Below, piece after piece: positions 12,288-54,501 of a stretch of 64,000 nucleotides of DNA (position 1 is its first letter; every line of letters starts with the position of its first letter). Source of the stretch: Guillardia theta CCMP2712 (Eukaryota > Protista > Cryptophyta). The translations under genes were made by a program, and so were the position numbers. The stretch covers positions 699,848 to 763,847 of the forward strand of contig NW_005434659.1 in the NCBI RefSeq assembly GCF_000315625.1, written 5' to 3'. The notes beneath the pieces are model-generated. The model made no database searches, was not told where the DNA came from, and saw nothing but the letters and a program-made list of their open reading frames with translations.

Positions 12288-13886
12288 TCATGCATTGAAG
12301 ATGAAACGTCCGAGCGAGCAGACTGTGTCCTGTAGAGCTTCGTCGTCGTCCGCCAGTTCCAAGGCCAGCATGTAGCGCTGCAGAGCTTCGGCAAGCTCCT
12401 TCCTCCCTTCTGCCTCCTTCCCTTCCTCCACGTGCCTGTTGTACCTCCGAGTCTCCTCCACCGTTAGCTCTGCGCGCGTCCTGGTCCATACCAAGGAGGG
12501 TGAAGGAGAGGGGCGGGAAGGCACAGGGCTCTCCGCTGCTGCTCCTCCCTCCTCGCCTTCGTCCTCAGCGCTCGTGGGGTCAGCCTGCGGTTCGCAAGGG
12601 CTGTCGCTCTCGCTAAGCTCCTCCTCTCCTCCTCCTCCTCCTTGCTCGTCTTCGCTTTCAGATCTCTTCGGTGACGAGTCATGCACAAAGCTCTCATCTT
12701 CAGCTCCTCTCGAGCCATCAGCAACATCCTTAGCAGGTGCTACAGCTGGAGCTGGAGCTGGAGCTGGAGCTGGAGCTGGCTCGTACTCATCGCTGATCCT
12801 GTATCGGTCAAGGAAGTCTTCGTGCTCCCTCGCTCTGCTGACTGTCGGCCCCCTCACCTTTTCCTTCTCCTGCTTGGGCTTCTTCAGGTTGATCTTCCTC
12901 GGAACCGAGGAGAAGGCGCCGTGTTGGGAGGAGGAGGAGGAGGAGTCATCGGGCCCCTCGGTAGGAGGAAGGAGCTTGGAGAAGAGCAGGTGGTAGTCGC
13001 TGACTCCTCGCACCATCGCCCCCCCGCACCTCTCGAGGAAGACGCGATGCTGCTCATGCTCGCACTGCTCCCGCTGCTCGCCGTGCAGCTCTTCGAGCTC
13101 CCTGTGTGTTTCAGAGCTCTGCATGTTGCCGATGGCGAAGAGAGCACGGAGCTGCTGCTTGCTGAAGTAGCGGAGCTGGTTCTCCTGCTGCATCACCACC
13201 TTGTTGAGGCCCCTCTTGAAGATCTGGTTCCGCAGGATCTTCTCCTCCACGGTCCCGCAGGTGACCAGCCGGTAGACCTGAGACGTCACCGTAAGGAGAC
13301 GAGCAGCTGCTGCAGGAAGAGCGTGCGGGGGATCGGGAGAAGTCTCTCGGGGGCGGGGGGGGCGGGGAGATATGTCAAGTATGAAATCAAGAGGAGGAAA
13401 GCGGGAGGGGGGGGGGGGGGGGGGGAAGGGGAGAAAGGGCCGGGAAAAGGGACGAACAGGTGAACCTGGAGGCAGAGACAGAGCAGGTTGATCTGAACTC
13501 CCTCTCCATCAGCTTCGAACTGCAGGCTCTGAAAGTCCCTGGATCATATCTAGAGGAGTACTACGGGGTGGATCTACNNNNNNNNNNNNNNNNNNNNNNN
13601 NNNNNNNNNNNNNNNNNNNNNNNNNNNNNNNNNNNNNNNNNNNNNNNNNNNNNNNNNNNNNNNNNNNNNNNNNNNNNTCGCACTTCTCCCCCTCTGCGCT
13701 TTCACCATCGCCCCCCTGGCCATCCCGATGCCGTCATTCTTTTACTGATTGAGAACCTTGTGAATGGTCACCCACCCCTCAATTAGACAACCAACAGACG
13801 TGTGACCCCGTACTCAATAACTTTGACAAAAGTACCCTGATATGGGGGAAGGAGAAGAAAGGCGAGGAGAAGGAGATGACAAGGAT

Positions 13887-13920
<34 letters not shown>

Positions 13921-16462
13921 AGCAGAGCAAGAAGAGGAAGGAACAGAGGGCGGAGAAAGACAAGGAAGAGGGAGAGAGGGAGGAGGAAGAGGGGGAGGAG
14001 GAAGAGAGGAAGAAGGAAGAGAGGGAGGAGGAGTATCCAAGTGGTCGCACCAGCACAGGACGCGTCTGCCCGACTCTGTAGGCGCGATCGACCGCCTGCG
14101 CGTCAGTCGCAGGATTCCAGGAGGGATCGTAGATGATGACCCGGTCCGCTCCCGTCAGGGTCAGGCCCACCCCTCCTACCCCAGTCGTGAGGAAGAGGAC
14201 CTTGACAGACTCCTTGCTGTTGAACTTCTTGACGATCCTCTCCCTGTCCGCCAGCTTGTTCACCTGCCCGTCGAGAAAGAGCGAGCTGATCTTGAGCGTG
14301 TCCGTGCAGGACCGCAGCAGCCGGAGCATCCTCGACGACTGGCTGAAGACCAGCGTCTTGTGCCCTCCCCTCTCGAGCTCCTGCAGCAGGTGGAGCACAA
14401 ACAGCATCTTGCTGGAGGCTACAGCAGCCCCGATCAGCTCCTTGGCCGCGGACGCAGGGAGAGCGTCCTGTGTGATGACGTGCTCCTGCTTCTTCCACGT
14501 CTCCAGCATCCTGCGTACAGAGAATGTATCCTCCTCCAGAGTCTCAGCCTCCTGCTCCTCGTCTGCCTCCCGCAGGGCCTCAAGGGAGCTCACTTCGGTA
14601 GCCTTCTGCAGGAGGTAAGGATGATCGCAAATCTTCTTGAGGACCGTCAGAGCTGCCAGGGGAGAGCGCGAGCTGCTGAGGGCTGCATGGACCACGTCGG
14701 AATCGAGGAACTGGCGGTAGACATGCTTCTGGAAGGACGTGGGCTCGAGCCACACGATCCACTCCTTCTTTGACACCTCCAGCCCGACCTGGATCCGAGC
14801 TCCTCCCTGCTCCTCAGGCCTCTCCTCTTCCCCTCCCACCTTCTTGTCTTTGTTGAAGACGTCGGCCTTGGTCCTCGCCAGCTGATACGGCATGAAGATG
14901 TCCCGCAACTCCCTCGCCCTCCTCTCCCCCAGCTGCTTCTCGGATGCTGCCGCAGACTTGTCATGTCCGTCTGCGATAGGACGGGAATAGTGAGCCTTGA
15001 ACTCCTGCTGGGGGGGGAGGAGGCCAGGGACCGCAAAGTCCAGCAGGGCCCAAAGCTCGTCGAGGTTGTTCTGGACGGGGGTCCCAGTGAGGAGCAGGCG
15101 ATGGTCAGCTGGGATTGTCCTGAGCTTCTTCGAAGTCTGGATCGACGGATTTTTCAGCTTGTGCCCCTCGTCGCAAACCACGTAGTCCCAATTCACCCTC
15201 GCCAGCTTCTCCGCTTGCGAGGAGGCCAGGCCGTAGGAGGTGAGAAGGACGCCCCCTCTCTTGTACACGGACTTGAGATTGTCGTCCCTCTCCCTCGTGT
15301 TGGCGCCGTGGAAGAGGAGGGGACTCACGTCCTTGCAGAACTTGCGGAACTCTCCCTCCCACACGGACAGCACAGAGACAGGGCAGACGATCAGAACGTG
15401 AGAGACCTGCTGCCCTTCAAAGCAGCCTCCTAGGAAGGTGATGGTCTGACAGGTCTTCCCCAGCCCCATCTCGTCCCCTAGGATCCCTCCTGCTCCTCTC
15501 TGGTGCAGCTCCCACAGCCATGCGACGCCCTCGCGCTGGTAAGGCAGCAGCCTCTCGTACGACTGCTTGCTGAGCGAGAAGGGCTCGGACCCCTCCAGCT
15601 CGTACCTTTCGTCCTCTCCGTCATAGCGCCAACCCTGCTGTGCTGTGACTCCCAGCCCCTCTCTGATGGCGGCCTTGCTCTGCCTCCTGCTCTGTCTCCT
15701 CACTTCCAGTAGGTTCTGAATCTTGGTGATCTTCTTTCGAAGCTTACTGTCCATATCCCACAGAGAGAACGCTTGCTGGTAGAACGAGAGAGCGTTTCTC
15801 AGGTCTCCTTCCCTCTCACAGCTCTGAGCCTCTTTGATGAGGTCGTTGTACGCTGTTCGAACTGCTTTGCAAGGTTTGTTCTCCTCCTTCTCTTCCTGCT
15901 GGCAAGGCGAGTTCGGGTCCCTGTTTTCGTCTCCCAGCTTGAACCTGGGGTTCAACTCCTGACGGGCAGAAGGGCTTTCATGTTCATCATCATAATTGTC
16001 GTCAGTTCCTTGATCAACGTCGTTCCTCGATGACATTGAGGGTTGGACCTGTTTCTGGCCCAATGGCGACCTCCCTGAGTCACAGAGTTCGCCACTGCTG
16101 TCCGGCTTGTAGCTGAGGCTCAGTCTACTCATACTTTCAATGAATTCACCACCATCTGCGTTTCGATCTCCGCATGATCTTGCAAGCTCGTTGCTGCAGG
16201 GATGATCTGCAAGCTGGTTTTCACCTTCACAATCTCTGACTTCGAAATCAGCTTCATCAGGCTTCTCATACAATCCTCCATCTTCGCGCTCATCTTCAGC
16301 GCTCTCGTCTTCTGATGATGATGTGTTTCCCCCAGCCTGATATGTTCGAGAAGGGAGGAAAGATAGAAGGTTGATCTCCTCCTCCTCCTCCTCCTCCTCC
16401 TCCTCCTCCTCCTCCTCCTCCTCCTCCTCCTCCTCTCGCTCTTCTTGCCATCTTGGTGCCAT
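12288..16462 (-). CDS. ERCC6L: SNF2-family DNA translocase, ERCC6L/PICH-like
   Basis: GGILGDEMGLGKT, VVCDEGH, LLLTGTPVQNN, LVFSQS, GGVGLTLTGADRVIIYDPSWNP, QAVDRAYRVGQ|VYRLVTCGTVEEKI. TPR-like helices at both ends (AYNDLIKEAQ..ALSFYQQA; YNRHVEEG..ALQRYMLAL) as in PICH. One intron, 13278..14050, spans the gap. Confidence 0.85.
13578..13677. other. Assembly gap (100 N)
   Basis: Run of N. Confidence 1.
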
Positions 16463-43684: not shown

Positions 43685-44383
43685 ATGCGGCCGGCCAATG
43701 TGCTGACGGCGGCAGCAAGCTTATGTGTGCTGATGATGGCACATGCTACTCCGCTCACTCATCATGCTCTGATCCATACGCCCGTCCTTCCCCGCCTTCC
43801 TCTCTCCTGGATCTCTCCGTCAAGCGAACCAGCGCACACTAGCCTCATACGTGCGAAAGAGGGGCTCATGGTAGCGCTCCGTGCCAAGGCAGAAGCAGTG
43901 AAGAGTGCGGAAGAGATTCAAGCGGAGAAGATCAGGAAGATTGCCCGCAGCGTCGATCAAGTTCTAGGATCTGTGATAACTGGGTTCATTGGCCCCTGGG
44001 TCATCGGCTGGATCTTTGGTACGATGACAGGCTTCAAAGGAAACGGATTCAAGGGAGCAATGAGCAACGGATTCTCCACAGGGACAGCATGGGGCTCAAT
44101 GAGTGCAGCTTTTTGTGGCGTTGAGGTGCTTGCACGCGAGATCAGAGGCAAGACTGACAAATGGAACAACATGATGGGAGCCTGCTCTGCAGGTGTGGTT
44201 GGTAACTGCGGCAAAGGAGTTGGCGCAATGGCTTCGGGTTGCGTGAATTTTGCTGTAATGTCGTACATCATTGATCTTTTCATCGACAAGAAGCAAGATC
44301 CGTTCGAAGAATATGCAAAAAATCCTAATTCGCAGGAGAAGGATCTGTTGCGAGCACAAAATACAAACAAGAAAGCTGAGTAA
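43685..44383 (+). CDS. Tim17/Tim22/Tim23 (PRAT) family membrane protein with N-terminal signal-peptide-like leader
   Basis: Intronless. GxxxG-rich helices and the PRAT signature WGSMSAAFCGVEVLAREIRGKTDKWNNMMGACSAG. Confidence 0.85.
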   Translation: MRPANVLTAAASLCVLMMAHATPLTHHALIHTPVLPRLPLSWISPSSEPAHTSLIRAKEGLMVALRAKAEAVKSAEEIQAEKIRKIARSVDQVLGSVITGFIGPWVIGWIFGTMTGFKGNGFKGAMSNGFSTGTAWGSMSAAFCGVEVLAREIRGKTDKWNNMMGACSAGVVGNCGKGVGAMASGCVNFAVMSYIIDLFIDKKQDPFEEYAKNPNSQEKDLLRAQNTNKKAE

Positions 44384-47327: not shown

Positions 47328-48743
47328 ATGCAGACCATAATCCTAGCAGTCGCTCTGGTTTCCTCGATAGCGTGGACGAATGCAGCACAGGGCCCTCTGT
47401 TACTCCCTGCTCAGGAATCTCTTGCAAAGATCCAACGACATGGCTATGTGCCGTTCAAGAGACACATTCCTTCCAACTTGAATCTTCGCGGTGGAGGAAA
47501 GGGTAACGTTCTCATCACCGGAGGTGCTGGGTACATTGGTACGCATTGTGCTGTTACGTTGCAAGAAGCTGGATACACAGTGATGATCCTGGACAACTTC
47601 AGCAACTCATGCAAGAAGAGTATTGAGAGAGTTGGAGAGATCACTGGGAAGTCGATCGAGAAAGTGTTTGATGTGGATATTCGTGACAAGGCAGCGCTGG
47701 ATAAAGTGTTCAAGGAAAACAAGGTTGACGCGGTAATTCACTGTGCGGGCTTGAAAGCTGTGGGCGAATCGGTGAGAGAGCCAATCGCATATTATGAAAA
47801 CAATTTTGTTGGAGCTCTCAATTTGATCAAGGCCATGTCTGCAGCAGGATGCAAGAAAATCGTCTTCTCTTCGTCTGCCACTGTGTATGGGAACCCTGCC
47901 AAGGTACCTATTACCGAGGATTTCCCACTGCAATGCACAAACCCCTACGGGAGAACCAAGTTCTTCATCGAAGAGATGTTGCGTGATGTAGCCAATGCAG
48001 ATCCAGAATGGAAGGTCATCAACTTGAGATATTTCAATCCTGTGGGAGCACATTCGAGTGGCAAGATCGGAGAGGACCCATCGGGCATTCCCAACAATCT
48101 TATGCCTTACGTGACCAAGGTTGCAATCGGCAAGCTCGAGAAGTTGACTGTGTTTGGAGACGACTACGACACTCCCGACGGCACCGGAGTCCGCGACTAC
48201 ATCCATGTGATGGATCTTGCCAAGGGACATGTTGCTGCTGTGGACAAGCTCTTCTCGATCGAAGGGGAGGTGAGCGACATGCGTAGTGTCGCTCTTGCAC
48301 GCTGATAGCATGCAGGTTGTGTACAACCTGGGAACTGGTCATGGGTACTCCGTCCTTGATATGGTCAAGGCGATGAAGGAGGTGATGAATCTTTCAGTCT
48401 CGTTTTGTTTGGAGTTGACGAAGGGGAAAACTCGATCAGGCGAGCGGCAGAGAAGTTCCATACGTGATTGGGCCGCGTCGATCAGGAGATGTGCCCACGT
48501 GCTATGCTGATGCAGCAAAGGCAAAGCAGGAGCTGGTCAGTCGATCGAAGTGTTGAGATGGTACTCTGACATCCTACTTAGCACTGGGAGGCCAAACTTG
48601 GGGTAAAGGAGATGTGCCAAGACGCGTGGAACTGGCAGGTAGAGCCCTTCCCCTCCTTACTCCTTCCCCTCCTCACTCCTTCGCAGTGCAAGAACCCCAA
48701 TGGCTACCGGGAAGAAGCTGAGCTCGCTGGTGCGAAGAAGTAA
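47328..48743 (+). CDS. GALE: UDP-glucose 4-epimerase with signal+transit leader ending in LRGG
   Basis: [58 protein letters not shown]; four introns at the 3' end. Confidence 0.95.
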
Positions 48744-49041: not shown

Positions 49042-51273
49042 TCACAGGGGGCTGCCCTCCACCGGCTGTCCCAGTAGAGGATCCATGCTTTCTTCCATCT
49101 CCTCATACGTCCCCTGTCAAACGGCACAGTCAGACCTGCAGCAATCTTAGCAAGAACCTGAGCTGACCTGGTACCAAGATAAGGCCAGGAGTCCGATGCT
49201 CGTGGCTCCGAGGATACAGGCAGCGACCAGCAGGCAGATGACGAGAAGCGAAGGTCCACCATGCGGCACCGCGAAGATGGCGAAGACAGAGCTGCCAGTA
49301 TCGAGGATGACGTGGATTCCCTTCTGCCTTGGGGTTCCAACCTCAAGGATGGCATAGTAGATGTAAGAGTTGCTCGTCGTCATAGGAATCCTCTCCACGT
49401 CGTGCGTGAACCCCAGGAGCCTCCTTTGCCCACCCAGCGATGGGTTGTGCAGGGGCGGCTCCTCATCACTCACCATCATCCCGTTCTGTACAGGATACGC
49501 GCCTCCCTGTTCTGCTGGCATTTGTGGGCTCGCGTACTGAGGAGCGTACTGGCCCGCCGCTGAGTAGCTCCCCTGCTGCGGCGGGAAGGCAGGGCCGGCG
49601 TCCATGGGATGAGACACGAAGGTCTGATATTGGACCTGCTGCGAGCCCGGGCTCGGTATCATGGGTTGGACACGCTGACTTGCGCTTTGAACCACAGGGG
49701 AGATAGACTGCTGCTGCTGCTGCTCCTCAGGACGGATGGGAATCGCCGGGATGGTCATGGGCTGAGGTTTCTGAACCTTCTTCTTGCCGAGAGGAACATG
49801 GTTGCGATCCCCAATCTTCTTGAACTGAGTGGTGAGCTGATAGCCAGGGGCTCGTTGGCCAAGCGTGACCTTTGGTTGCATCGGATCGTTGAGGTCATGT
49901 ACGACTACCATCCTCCGGAAGAAGACATCTCCGAGCAGGAAAGTTCGAGGAGTTGACTTCATCTTCATCACGCAAGGCTTGTCGTCCACCATGTAGTCGT
50001 CGTACGGCAGGGAGAACGTCTGCCCCTCGATGGTGATGTAGATGGTGGGCTCATCGAGATCACCGAAGTACTTCTGGAAGGACTTGAAGGGGCTTGCAAG
50101 TAGCCCCCCCTCAAACGTGTCGTCGGGAACCACCAGGCAGGATGTACCGGAGTCAAGGATGGCCTGGATGGCGATGGACTGATCCCGAAACTGCAGGAGC
50201 TCGTGATCACCGATCTTGAGGCTCTGCACGTCGATCATGTAGTGCATGAATGCTGATGTGCCGTCGCCGAGCGGGCTGGCCCTCACCCCTGTCGTCACCG
50301 TCTTGCCCTTCACTGAAGATGGGTCGTATCCTCCCAAGACCAGCTCCCCCCGGTCCTCCGAGAGCATAAGGGTGAACACTCGATTCATGAGGATGTTGCT
50401 GTTGTCCTCGTCTGCTTTCGTTGGGTCTGTGAGCGCCCAGAACAAAGGATAAGGAACGCTGCGCAGAGCCGCTGCCGGGAAACCCATGCCGAGAATGCCG
50501 TCTGCCTGCGCCCAGTCGTGTCCCTTGCTCTTGGTCACGCATCCGAAGCGTGTGTTGACGTAGTAGCTGCCCAGTTGCACTACGTCCTTGGCTACGAAGC
50601 CAGTGAGAGAGGCGTCATCGAGGTACTCGACCTTGAAGAGCTGCTCTTCGTTGTAAAAGGATGTGCTCTTATTCGGATGAAATTGCCCGCACATGCTTGA
50701 TGCCACGAGCGAGACAAGAATCAAGCTCTTCAACAGCCCGCCAGTGAAGGTTGGCGAACATATCGGACGACAGTGGGCGGCCACGTGCGAAGCTAGTCTC
50801 ATCCTCGAGTCCTGGTTCATACAGGTAGTGTTGCAAGTGATAGATGATGGCTCAGACGCAAGAAGGGAAGGAGGGCATGAATGATAGGTCTGGGAGGGAG
50901 TGTGGACCACAGTAGAATCCATTGCAAGATCGAGAGGGCACGGAGATGCTGGTGACGAAGAGGATGGCAGCACCTCAGAGAGAGGAGGAGGAGGAGACTC
51001 CGAAGAAGCAGCAAGCAGCTCCTCCGGCCCCCCTCCATGGTAGAGGCAGCCGCCGCCTCCCTCTCCTGCCCCCATGACGTGGGTGCTGTTTGGTGTAATT
51101 TGACCCCATCCCCACTCATTCCCTTGAACTTCATTGTAGCCCTCATCCCCTAACATATAATCCTCAGAGGCAGAAAGGCGGGCTCTATGCAGCAGGAACG
51201 GGGCATGCGGAGAGATAGCGCTGAAGATGCTGCCGCTGCTGTCAGGAGAAGGTGGACAGGATGGTTCTGTCAT
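49042..51273 (-). CDS. Pepsin-family (A1) aspartic protease, membrane-anchored, apparently circularly permuted
   Basis: ORF 49147..51273 contains DGILGMGF, AILDSGTS and FLLGDVFFR, later YYAILEVGTP..VILDTGSS, then a TM helix. Probable last exon GTYEEMEESMDPLLG..* ends at 49042. The start may be M158 (50802). Confidence 0.85.
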
Positions 51274-51427
51274 GCCATGATCTCTGATTGATACTTCCTC
51301 GTCCTCGTTGGGTTGTCTTCCGAGAGAGATACGAAGAGATAAAGAATAGGGTTGGGAGAAGGAAAGGCGGATCTGGATAGGAAGGATAGAGATACAGAGA
51401 GGAAGACATCTATTCCTCTGTATACAG

Positions 51428-53547
51428 ATGTCACAAATAGATGTTTCTTGCTCAAACTTGTTGCTGTTGAGTTTACTCTATCCTATGCTTGCGCAAGGGT
51501 GGTCAGGTCGATGGCACCAATGTGTCTCAGGTTTTCGACCCACGATGAGGCTCCGATTGAGGGGAGGGAGCGACGAAATGGAGTATGGCACAGGAAACGC
51601 GAGTAAATTCTGCAAAGACATTCATGAGATTCCGGACGATTCATCGTCATGGATACGGAGGAATAAGACTGATGTTTCCTCATATGCCATGGATGTTGTC
51701 AGGATAAGATTCGGCAGACATGATCAGTTAGAGAGTGGAAGGCTGGTGGGATACAAGCCACTGTTTGTTCACCAGGTATTCGGGTACGATGAGCTCATCG
51801 ATGGATACATCGACCCATCTTGCAACGTCACATATGCAGAAGATGATCTCCGACCGCTCATTTCCTTCTCAAGCAAGGGCAAGCACCCAGATATAGAAAA
51901 GTCTGGACTGAACTTGACCGATGTGGTTGGAAGCATCCACGAGCATGCTCCTGCAGATTACATTGCCGTCCAAGAGGCTGGCAAGAGGTATCCGCCTTTC
52001 AAGCCAATGGGACAGTACCTGAATTATTACTCTGGATATGACATTGGTCTGTGTGAGAGGGAAGTGACGGAAATGAACGAGCAAAGGGGAGGATCTGTCA
52101 GATTCGAGATGTACCAGTGCCATGTTTCCTCTGATATGAGCCCGGAAATCAAAAACTTCTTCATGCGCACACAAAGTCTTGCCATCTGGTTCATCGAAGC
52201 CCTCTCCTACATTGAGCTCGACGACCCTGGATGGTCCATTGTACTGACTTACGAGGCAACCACTTTGAATTCAAAGAAGACAGCCAACGTGGAGGAAGTT
52301 AGATATCGACTCGTAGGGTTCGCCACTCTCTACCGTCATCGGCTTGTCAATGTGTGGGTTGAGTTCGAGGGGTGACTTTCTGACTCCTCCTGTAGACGAC
52401 GATGGAAAAGGTAAAGGATATCACACCCAACCTGGAAGATGTCGTTGGACGGAATGATATATTCCGTTTGAATATCAGTCAGTTTTTGATTCTTCCTGAG
52501 TATCAGCGAAAGGTGGATTGCTTTGATACTTGCAATGAAGCAAGAAAGTAATGATGTCCTAGGGACATGGCGCCCAAATGATGCGACAAATCTACAAGAT
52601 TGCCATGAAAGATGACAAGGTTGAAATCAACCTTGTTTTTGAGGTAAAAGTAATATCTATTTCAGTTGCTGGATCTACAAGTGGAAGATCCAACCGATGG
52701 ATTTCAAGAGATGAGGGTAAAATTTTCGTACGATCGATCCTCAACTCACTCCCACGAAGATGAAAATAGAGCTGGACATGCTGAGGGAGTCGAAACTCAT
52801 GGATCAGCTTCGCGGAAATTCACCTTCCTGGGGATCTTTACAGAAAAAGTGAAACAGGCTTGAATATTGAGAACATTCATTGAGCAATTGAGTTTTTATG
52901 TTGATCAGGTATAAGTTCCACATGGTAGAACTCTTTGATCTGGCACAAAAGTTGGGCTGTAAGGTGAAAGTCTGACCCGTAACATGTTGAGATTGTGCTC
53001 ATTTGATCTCCTGTGCTACTTTGAGCAGGTGGGCAGAAGAGGCGTCAAAGAAGATTCGTCTGGCATGAAGACAGTTGCTGGAGTTGTTGTCAACATGACC
53101 TACGTTTACGAGGTGAATTCAATCCTGACATGTCTCTCGACTTTAGTTGCCTTTTCTCTTGACTTCCCTTGCCTGCATTTCGCAGAGATCTGCCATCGTA
53201 GGCTTCACCATGTCAGAAGTGGATGATGTCCTGCAAGCCATTCTCCCAGAGGATCTACGTCAAACGACCGGTCCACAAGACGCGGCTGAGAAACTCCTGG
53301 TCGCAATATACATGGCGGTTGTTGCCGACTACGGGCAGGTTGGTTTGGTCTGCTGCTCTACCTTGCAAGTTGCTGACTTCCACAGGCGGAGGGCCTCTCA
53401 GATCAGCAGGTCGATCAGCTGCTGGAGAGTGTGGACTCCGGTCGCCTTAAGGAACTCCAAAGTCCTCGAGACATCGCCAGATTGGTCTTGCCGCTGATTG
53501 GCATGATTAAGAAAGGTCTCAACCCCAAAGCAATGACGGACGATTGA
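51428..53547 (+). CDS. HAT1: Histone acetyltransferase type B catalytic subunit (HAT1-like) with signal+transit leader ending in RLRGG
   Basis: Hat1_N FVHQVFGYDELIDGY; IWFIEALSYIELDDPGW; LVGFATLY; RLNISQFLILPEYQRK|GHG; LQVEDPTDGFQEMR. Confidence 0.88.
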
Positions 53548-53592
53548 AGTCAATGAAACATGATTCACTTGGAGAATTTATGTGACAATTTA

Positions 53593-54501
53593 TCTATTTG
53601 TTACTCAGTGCTTCAAGATGCCGAGGAACACTGCTAGGAAAGGCTCAATTTCTGACTTCTTTACCTTGGAAGTGTGCTGGATGGAGCGATAGAGAATCGC
53701 ACGCCCTGCAAACCCTACAGGAGAAATTCATTGCAACATTCGGACCGTTCGCCTTCACCCTTACCACGTTCCGTCCCCTCCGAACTTCCCCCAATTTGGT
53801 TAGGGCCGAGAGATATTCATCGATCTGGACTTTCCCGATCCCTGTCTTGGAAGCGATGTCTGAAGCTTTCATGGGGTTTGAGCTTTCAGAGATTTTCCTT
53901 AAAACCTGTACAGAACTTAGTAGTTGATGGCTGCTAAATTCCTTGCTGCGTACCATCTCTAATTGCTTGAGGTGAAGTGTTGTATGAAACTGAGCCCTGT
54001 CAGAGTTCTGCCTTGTCCAAACAAGTTCTGGCACACCTTCTTTGGAAGTTTTTCTTTGAAGAACTCTTGGATTTGTGAGGAGCTGGGTAGCTTCACTGCT
54101 GCTGTTTCCGAGATGTCATCTTGCTCGACGTCATCGTGCAGTTCATCGCTCCCTAATGATCTGTTCTCCTTCTCTTGAACCGCCTTCTGTGTATTCTGAT
54201 TCATCAACAGCTCGATCTCAGCAGAAATTTCAATCAAAAAGATGCGAAGACACCTTGCTGACATCGAGATCTAGAGCAACAGCTGCCGTAACTACCCCAT
54301 TGAGCAATTTCTCCATTCCAGCATTGAACCTGGAAAGGAACCGTTCGATCAGCAATGGTCGACTTGTGAGATGACAAGAGAACTGTGTATCTACCCTATG
54401 ATGGATGTATTGACGTCCTTGAGTCGCTTCATGGCAACTGTCGCTTCCTCCGTTGCCCTCCGCGTCTCGTCCAGCAAAGCCGACACCCGCTCCCACGCCA
54501 T
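53593..54501 (-). CDS. Hypothetical protein: N-terminal coiled coil, C-terminal winged-helix-like segment
   Basis: MAWERVSALLDETRRATEE..; VLRKISESSNPMKASDIASKTGIGKVQIDEYLSALTKLGEVRR has a wHTH pattern. Confidence 0.6.

Follow-up and report, generated by a model that had tools for sequence, protein, structure and literature searches.

A HAT1-type acetyltransferase of Guillardia theta with an LRGG-ending leader: a candidate for import into the periplastid compartment

The window analysed here is a stretch of 64,000 nucleotides of nuclear DNA from the cryptophyte Guillardia theta CCMP2712 (contig NW_005434659.1, positions 699,848 to 763,847 of the forward strand). It carries a gene for a HAT1-type histone acetyltransferase (HAT), GUITHDRAFT_104111, which corresponds to the first-exon open reading frame (ORF) 51428-52351 (100% identity over 87% of the ORF length). 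The public protein of 524 amino acids begins with 'MRLRLRGG', which is M40 of the ORF that starts at ATG 51428. Read from this upstream ATG, a 47-codon leader is closed by RLRLRGG at 51568 and runs in frame into the Hat1_N domain. An earlier reading made from the letters alone (the sequence-only reading) had described this ORF with its leader in frame with the Hat1 domains, and its coordinates, 51428-53547, proved exact. It had also proposed that the host supplies the enzyme to the nucleomorph, the relic nucleus of the endosymbiont. Here, we describe the gene, its leader and its relatives and weigh where the protein may act.

Gene structure and translation start

The gene structure was read from three independent RNA data sets (X1, X2 and X3), whose Logan contigs were placed on positions 50900-53800. 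The spliced contigs contain eight GT..AG introns (52352-52395, 52513-52562, 52620-52665, 52717-52759, 52849-52908, 52964-53028, 53113-53185 and 53339-53385). Joined from ATG 51428, the nine exons (Table 1) add up to 1692 nt with a single terminal stop and encode a 563-aa product ending at 53547, whose C-terminal 524 residues are exactly the public model. The RNA contigs reach 51189 (X1), 51183 (X2) and 51244 (X3) at the 5' end, 184-245 nt upstream of ATG 51428, and the X1 contig beginning at 51189 is spliced across all eight introns. ATG 51428 thus lies within the mRNA in three studies, and a transcript start downstream of it, at which the leader would be lost, was not found. RNA contigs of the upstream aspartyl protease gene on the opposite strand end at 50993-51083, with near-zero depth between them and HAT1.

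The closest in-frame stop 5' of ATG 51428 is at 51347, and the 137 nt directly before the ATG are ATG-free (no ATG in 51280-51427). The stretch from ATG 51428 to the annotated start contains four extra ATGs, only one of them in frame. Because all four would have to be skipped, M40 is unlikely to be the main start under scanning. The strongest argument for translation of the leader comes from comparison with the transcript-derived protein of Hanusia phi (P0002), which has its own Met, a hydrophobic stretch, the pattern ..RG-WSG-E-W.., a spacer and RLRMRGG. It is 51% identical to the G. theta protein over aa 18-81, with the frame unchanged.

Some features of the transcript speak against initiation at this codon. 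Its context is weak (C at -3), and the longest form of the 5' untranslated region (UTR) has six short upstream ORF (uORF) ATGs at 51187-51277; these uORFs of 2-34 codons each are all closed by ~51290 and may be part of a minor long isoform or a regulator of translation. Furthermore, the raw-read RNA run X19 yielded 7 reads, too few for mapping the 5' end. Given the weak context, leaky scanning past ATG 51428 may occur to some extent. M40 and M51 both have better -3 contexts than M1. This difference, together with the public model beginning at M40, could suggest that the leader is untranslated 5' UTR and the gene a second cytosolic or nuclear HAT1 started at M40 or M51. We regard this as very improbable, since it requires skipping four ATGs, while the 39 upstream codons are conserved in frame and at the protein level in Hanusia and the same layout recurs in nine further proteins. 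The leader kept in H. phi and the layout shared by the whole clade described below also argue against a chance extension of the ORF. Altogether, the observation is confirmed, and the public model of this gene has to be extended by 39 codons at its N-terminus, with the start at ATG 51428.

A leader confined to one clade of HAT1 proteins

Profile, alignment and structure model support the mature part as a bona fide HAT1-fold enzyme with intact catalytic motifs. Pfam Hat1_N (PF10394) matches aa 85-257 with an E-value of 1e-17 (65 bits, cut-off 22.9; profile positions 3-157 of 157), while the match to the GNAT core, Acetyltransf_1, is weak and stays just below its threshold (20.0 bits, cut-off 20.7). 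In a phmmer search of the PDB sequences, yeast Hat1 (E 6e-17) and human HAT1 (E 3e-13) were recovered; in these alignments the acetyl-CoA motif QRKGHGA lies on yeast QNKGHGS, and the catalytic acidic motifs WFIEALSYI and QVEDPTDGF lie on FIEAANYI and TVEDPNEAF. Alignment A1 of the clade shows no variation in the FIEA and VEDP columns. An AlphaFold model computed from a nine-sequence alignment (mean predicted local distance difference test score, pLDDT, of 76) has its best PDB matches in human HAT1 (2P0W/6VO5; E 5e-24, target template-modelling score 0.78-0.79), and yeast Hat1 is matched as well; the next family, MYST, follows only at E 1e-7. At the N-terminus of the public model, 37 residues that include RLRLRGG and an acidic linker are modelled as disordered (pLDDT 24-29), which places LRLRGG outside the HAT1 fold.

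The leader is built from a signal-peptide-like segment, a transit-peptide-like spacer and the terminal hexamer (Table 1). The hydrophobic core of the first segment, LLLLSLLYPML, comprises 11 residues with a mean Kyte-Doolittle value of 2.25 and is followed by two sites that fit the (-3,-1) rule: G24|W25 (AQG|W), with the more usual spacing and A-Q-G at -3 to -1, and S26|G27 (GWS|G). Cleavage at G24|W25 gives W as the +1 residue, in Hanusia as well; the sequence-only reading had likewise predicted W and had therefore kept the plastid stroma as a possible destination. The 23-residue spacer begins with this W and has a net charge of +5 without any acidic residue or lysine, so that a basic, acid-poor segment follows the signal-like part. 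Only 17 residues, disordered in the model (pLDDT 24-29), separate the signal-like part from LRLRGG, which sits exactly at the switch from the basic leader to the acidic mature part and which we take to be identical to residues 71-76 of ubiquitin. RxLR and PEXEL motifs were considered for the hexamer on inspection and rejected, since neither agrees with its residue spacing.

An exhaustive HMMER search found 176 relatives, whereas a word-index protein search had reached only Hanusia and a few metagenome proteins. The closest relatives after Hanusia are P0003-P0009 (34-42% identity), which come from Tara Oceans and Joint Genome Institute (JGI) metagenomes and one transcriptome run. All ten members of this clade share one layout: a signal-like stretch, a basic spacer, LxL[RK]GG and an acidic start. 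In each orthologue a Met precedes an 11-residue hydrophobic core (Kyte-Doolittle 2.05-2.98); the spacers vary between 18 and 54 residues, +1 and +9 in net charge and 0 and 3 in acidic residues, and an acidic stretch follows immediately after the hexamer, which occurs as LRLRGG, LRMRGG, LALRGG, LILRGG, LTLKGG or LALKGG. A maximum-likelihood tree of 103 HAT1s groups the ten leader-bearing proteins in a single clade (SH-aLRT, an approximate likelihood ratio test, 99).

Among 175 proteins, the motif [LIVM]-x-[LIVM]-[RK]-GG is restricted to this clade and near copies, with the exception of two loose xAVRGG matches in the BAH-type HAT1s P0011 and P0015, and none of the ~140 other HAT1s has the motif preceded by a signal-like stretch. 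The positions equivalent to ubiquitin L71, L73, R74, G75 and G76 are kept, and position 72 varies (R, A, T or I); ubiquitin and NEDD8 also differ at position 72. Since the rest of the spacer is unconserved, the hexamer is, judged by this comparison, under selection. This ubiquitin-tail junction, to which the sequence-only reading had assigned no function, is what is most novel about the gene; in the proteins compared, the leader diverges everywhere except here. As a side observation, the members of a sister group (P0010-P0012, P0015 and P0020) are HAT1-like proteins with a BAH-like C-terminal extension, and P0011 has a hydrophobic stretch and then CAVRGG far upstream of the domain.

The basic spacer also bears on another destination. 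If the hydrophobic stretch were a signal anchor or a plain secretion signal, the protein would reside in the endoplasmic reticulum (ER) or elsewhere in the secretory pathway and never cross the periplastid membrane. The direct sequence support for targeting, which concerns the hydrophobic segment only, is compatible with this idea, and the literature cites a type-B HAT anchored in the Golgi, HAT4. We nevertheless consider it improbable: in all orthologues the signal is followed by a basic spacer, in contrast to ER residents, which start acidic (PMC3017844), and no substrate for histone-type enzymes that depend on acetyl-CoA is known in the ER lumen.

The G. theta genome encodes a second, leaderless HAT1, GUITHDRAFT_99389 (P0075, XP_005841716.1, 495 aa), so the leader-bearing protein is not the only HAT1 of this alga, a point on which the sequence-only reading depended. 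GUITHDRAFT_99389 has no signal but an acidic N-terminus and a basic patch, KNKRARF (KRARF), and is 26% identical to the leader-bearing HAT1. Both paralogues fall into one 21-row clade of the tree, with Phytophthora just outside, and Cryptomonas paramecium transcripts form another cluster in the leaderless sister set. GUITHDRAFT_99389 is presumably the host cytosolic or nuclear enzyme. Because G. theta has this leaderless HAT1 in addition, GUITHDRAFT_104111 is, by its sequence, most probably a dedicated organelle-directed paralogue.

LRGG-type leaders on other genes and the origin of the clade

The same kind of leader is present on a second, unrelated gene in the neighbourhood, also in the window, which encodes a UDP-glucose 4-epimerase-type protein. 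Its signal-like segment (aa 1-19, ..WTNA|A; +1 residue A) is followed by a 31-residue spacer and LNLRGG (47478-47495), and the Epimerase domain begins 5 aa after this hexamer. UDP-glucose-based starch synthesis takes place in the periplastid compartment (PPC), where an epimerase would fit, and we regard the protein as a candidate periplastid enzyme on the basis of its leader. In a six-frame translation of the whole window the motif occurs seven times, and only the HAT1 and epimerase matches are preceded by a signal-like start. The LRLRGG at 15209-15226 (plus strand) lies in a 145-codon open frame with no signal-like start and is probably due to chance or to a wrong frame or strand; the four other matches, likewise with no signal-like start, were set aside as chance. 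A Tim17/22-like membrane protein (43685-44383, plus strand) combines a signal-like start with a long spacer and contains no RGG motif, which means that not every leader in the window is of the LRGG type.

On three marine-metagenome contigs with HAT1 orthologues (L001, L005 and L008), the divergent neighbour of HAT1 encodes a glycine-rich RRM protein, whose first exon reads as signal, short spacer, LQLRGG or LRLRGG and then a glycine-rich stretch. Three marine eukaryotes share the gene order UbiE-methyltransferase / RRM / HAT1, which was also found on a 53-kb contig. A third ORF with a signal-like start, a spacer and LILRGG lies near 13165 (plus strand) of the 13-kb contig L001 and is cut by the contig end. 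Over all these sequences, a signal-like start precedes 9 of 20 motif matches, compared to 7 of 61 matches of eight control motifs. The HAT1 genes through which the loci were chosen account for four of the nine, so the independent enrichment, 5 of 16, is modest. No paper linking an LRGG-type leader motif to periplastid, cryptophyte or transit peptides was found in a literature search whose coverage ends at subscription journals, and the ASAFind 2.0 supplements contain no entry for these G. theta gene ids.

The source of the metagenome orthologues matters for the function of the clade. Their contigs have a GC content of 0.60-0.62, are gene-dense and carry fewer introns than G. theta. We consider it probable that they derive from marine cryptophytes: the leaderless clade branches in parallel, with G. 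theta beside three metagenome proteins, the leader-bearing clade contains no named diatom, haptophyte or pelagophyte sequence, and the RRM protein on the orthologue contigs carries the same leader. If algae without a nucleomorph were nevertheless among them, the enzyme might reside in the PPC and acetylate targets other than histones, for example import substrates or SELMA components, and do so also in algae that lost the nucleomorph. The contig properties, unlike those of G. theta, and the strong divergence of the clade from canonical HAT1 (26-33% identity) would agree with such a role. It appears distinctly unlikely to us, however, as the 90% clusters of the clade hold no named diatom, haptophyte or pelagophyte genome, H4-type catalytic and substrate-groove motifs are kept, and the RRM protein on the orthologue contigs, with its leader of this type, points to RNA metabolism at the destination.

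The coordinates of the features are collected in Table 1. Two further genes flank HAT1 in the window. The aspartyl protease ORF (49147-51273, minus strand, 708 aa) starts at 51273, and because its RNA contigs end at 50993-51083, its first 60-odd codons probably lie outside the mRNA, with the true start further in. Downstream, a convergent gene (53645-54264, minus strand) has an intron at 53714-53763 (CT..AC on the plus strand, run X2) and a 129-aa ORF with a weak winged-helix match (FaeA/ArsR-type, E 3.5e-5). The 3' UTR of HAT1 directly adjoins the transcript of this gene.

Table 1. Positions of the features, in coordinates of the window unless a contig is named
Feature	Position	Strand	Basis
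UDP-glucose 4-epimerase-type gene, first exon	47328..48302	+	ORF, Epimerase domain
HAT1 5' UTR as far as RNA contigs extend	51183..51427	+	RNA contigs
Coding exon 1 (leader, disordered acidic linker, Hat1_N at 51680-52198)	51428..52351	+	RNA joints, Pfam
Signal-peptide-like segment, aa 1-24	51428..51499	+	heuristic: hydrophobicity, (-3,-1) rule
Transit-peptide-like spacer, aa 25-47	51500..51568	+	sequence composition
M40 codon, start of public model GUITHDRAFT_104111	51545..51547	+	annotation
LRLRGG, aa 42-47	51551..51568	+	sequence
Exon 2, ends inside acetyl-CoA motif (..EYQRK / GHGA..)	52396..52512	+	RNA joints
Exon 3	52563..52619	+	RNA joints
Exon 4, holds catalytic VEDP motif	52666..52716	+	RNA joints, alignment
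Exon 5	52760..52848	+	RNA joints
Exon 6	52909..52963	+	RNA joints
Exon 7	53029..53112	+	RNA joints
Exon 8	53186..53338	+	RNA joints
Exon 9 including stop codon	53386..53547	+	RNA joints
RRM neighbour leaders	L001 7709-7849; L005 near 9825; L008 near 8971	-	ORF reading

Destination of the enzyme and comparison with known systems

Published rules separate two destinations behind the signal peptide. Proteins with F (or W, Y or L) at +1 are directed to the stroma, those without to the PPC (PMC12136025, PMC5756292, PMC5443833), and PPC-type leaders tolerate acidic residues, whereas stromal leaders are acid-free in the first 15 positions (PMC12136025). A chromatin protein has already been traced to the nucleomorph of G. 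theta: a nucleus-encoded H2A with a signal and a transit-like leader was localised there by immunofluorescence (PMC5443833). The nucleomorph itself encodes H3, H4, H2B and an Asf1-like protein, and the import of further HATs into its compartment has been suggested (PMC4822330, PMC6559170); among its reported genes are one for a GCN5-type HAT and another for a 'histone acyltransferase' whose type is not given.

Against this background, we propose that GUITHDRAFT_104111 is imported into the PPC to acetylate nucleomorph-encoded H4, and we put the probability of this at about 0.5. Translation would start at ATG 51428, the first ~24 residues would act as an ER signal peptide and the next 23 basic, acid-free residues would work like a transit peptide that carries the protein across the periplastid membrane. 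HAT1 would then most probably stay in the PPC, the relic cytoplasm of the endosymbiont. Functional logic favours this compartment because nucleomorph histones are translated there, and there a type-B HAT would meet new H4 before its import into the nucleomorph. Regarding the proposal that the host supplies HAT1 to the nucleomorph, the sequence-only reading holds for the leader, which is transcribed, in frame and conserved, and for the HAT1 fold and motifs behind it; the destination is what we infer, and here the +1 rule is opposed to it.

The competing destination is the stroma, where the enzyme would be a lysine acetyltransferase of plastid proteins instead of histones, with a full bipartite plastid signal, W as the +1 residue and LRGG as a cryptophyte stromal processing site. 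A plastid-encoded HU-like protein could be a substrate. GWSG-W at the predicted cleavage site is kept between Guillardia and Hanusia, the G. theta spacer is basic and acid-free as in stromal transit peptides, and P0006 reads ..SNA|F. Seven of the ten orthologues, in contrast, have a non-aromatic residue at the likely +1 position (A, S, G, I, D or R), and in several the early part of the spacer contains acidic residues, as in leaders of the PPC type. In addition, no HAT1-type enzyme is known from any plastid stroma, the same leader type stands on proteins of nucleo-cytosolic type (the epimerase and the RRM protein), and the diatom stromal cleavage motif, A/S at -3 and L at -2 (A/S-L-x|), is unlike LRGG (PMC3774753). 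We therefore rate a stromal enzyme as unlikely, if with a real chance of being right. For G. theta, the rule as applied to the sequence leaves PPC versus stroma unsettled.

What happens to the leader after import may be linked to its conserved end. Precursors of ubiquitin, NEDD8 and ISG15 and the LxGG sites of viral polyproteins are cut by deubiquitinase-type proteases. A ubiquitin-tail-specific protease of the PPC would cut after GG, remove the leader and thereby end further import; we hold such a cut to be conceivable and only slightly against the odds. Removal of the leader in the PPC would explain the retention of proteins with W or F at +1. Such an activity would correspond to the 'TPL peptidase' of the PPC that is postulated in the literature without a named enzyme (PMC5756292). 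The complete idea, in which LxL[RK]GG mimics the tail of ubiquitin or NEDD8 and serves as a processing and retention signal of PPC proteins, is cut by a deubiquitinase-type 'TPL peptidase' and allows the host to supply the H3-H4 deposition pathway, HAT1 included, to the nucleomorph, is put forward tentatively, as something we expect to be wrong somewhat more often than right.

Several points weigh against import into the PPC followed by cleavage at the hexamer. The +1 rule contradicts a PPC destination in G. theta, where an aromatic +1 residue is avoided only with cleavage at S26|G27, and P0006 with its F repeats the problem. Both signal peptide and cleavage site are predictions from hydrophobicity and the (-3,-1) rule alone, and the n-region of the G. 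theta leader carries no net positive charge. For the diatom deubiquitinase ptDUP no homologue is known in cryptophytes, which must use another enzyme (PMC12412216). The 23-residue spacer contains no ubiquitin fold, which most deubiquitinases need. Finally, a histone role cannot be the general function of the clade if the orthologues include nucleomorph-less algae.

Little is known of which host proteins run the nucleomorph, for two reasons: predictions of targeting are weak, and the true N-termini are missing from many gene models. GUITHDRAFT_104111 is an example of the second, as its public model has no leader and targeting prediction on that model could not flag it. If the proposal is true, a host-encoded type-B HAT in the endosymbiont cytoplasm would give the host control over the histone acetylation that is linked to deposition in the relic nucleus, and this control would stand beside the host-encoded H2A already shown. 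A conserved ubiquitin-tail junction would moreover be a simple sequence marker for finding such imported proteins and a testable candidate for the removal of transit-like leaders in the PPC, a step without a known enzyme.

The Guillardia protein agrees with canonical HAT1/KAT1 (yeast Hat1 1BOB/4PSW, human 2P0W) in its fold of Hat1_N and GNAT, in the motif for acetyl-CoA and in the catalytic acidic motifs (Glu and Glu-Asp). It differs in an identity of only 19-22%, in an added 83-residue N-terminal extension made up of the leader and the disordered acidic linker, in a C-terminal region without a Pfam match and in its position in a separate clade of which every member bears a leader. The closest comparison within the organism is GUITHDRAFT_99389, which belongs to the same family and the same 21-member clade.

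With the nucleomorph H2A (PMC5443833), HAT1 shares a host-nuclear gene for a chromatin protein, an extension of signal and transit-like leader and leaderless host paralogues. In contrast to H2A, it is an enzyme and not a histone, and its leader has W at the preferred site, whereas the H2A leader has no aromatic +1 residue. Ubiquitin-like precursors have in common with the HAT1 leader the C-terminal L-R-L-R-G-G tail, but no beta-grasp ubiquitin fold lies ahead of the tail in HAT1. SELMA import and ptDUP of diatoms, finally, are comparable in that the compartment contains ubiquitin machinery and has a need to remove transit-like leaders (PMC3101018, PMC5756292), although cryptophytes are without ptDUP (PMC12412216).

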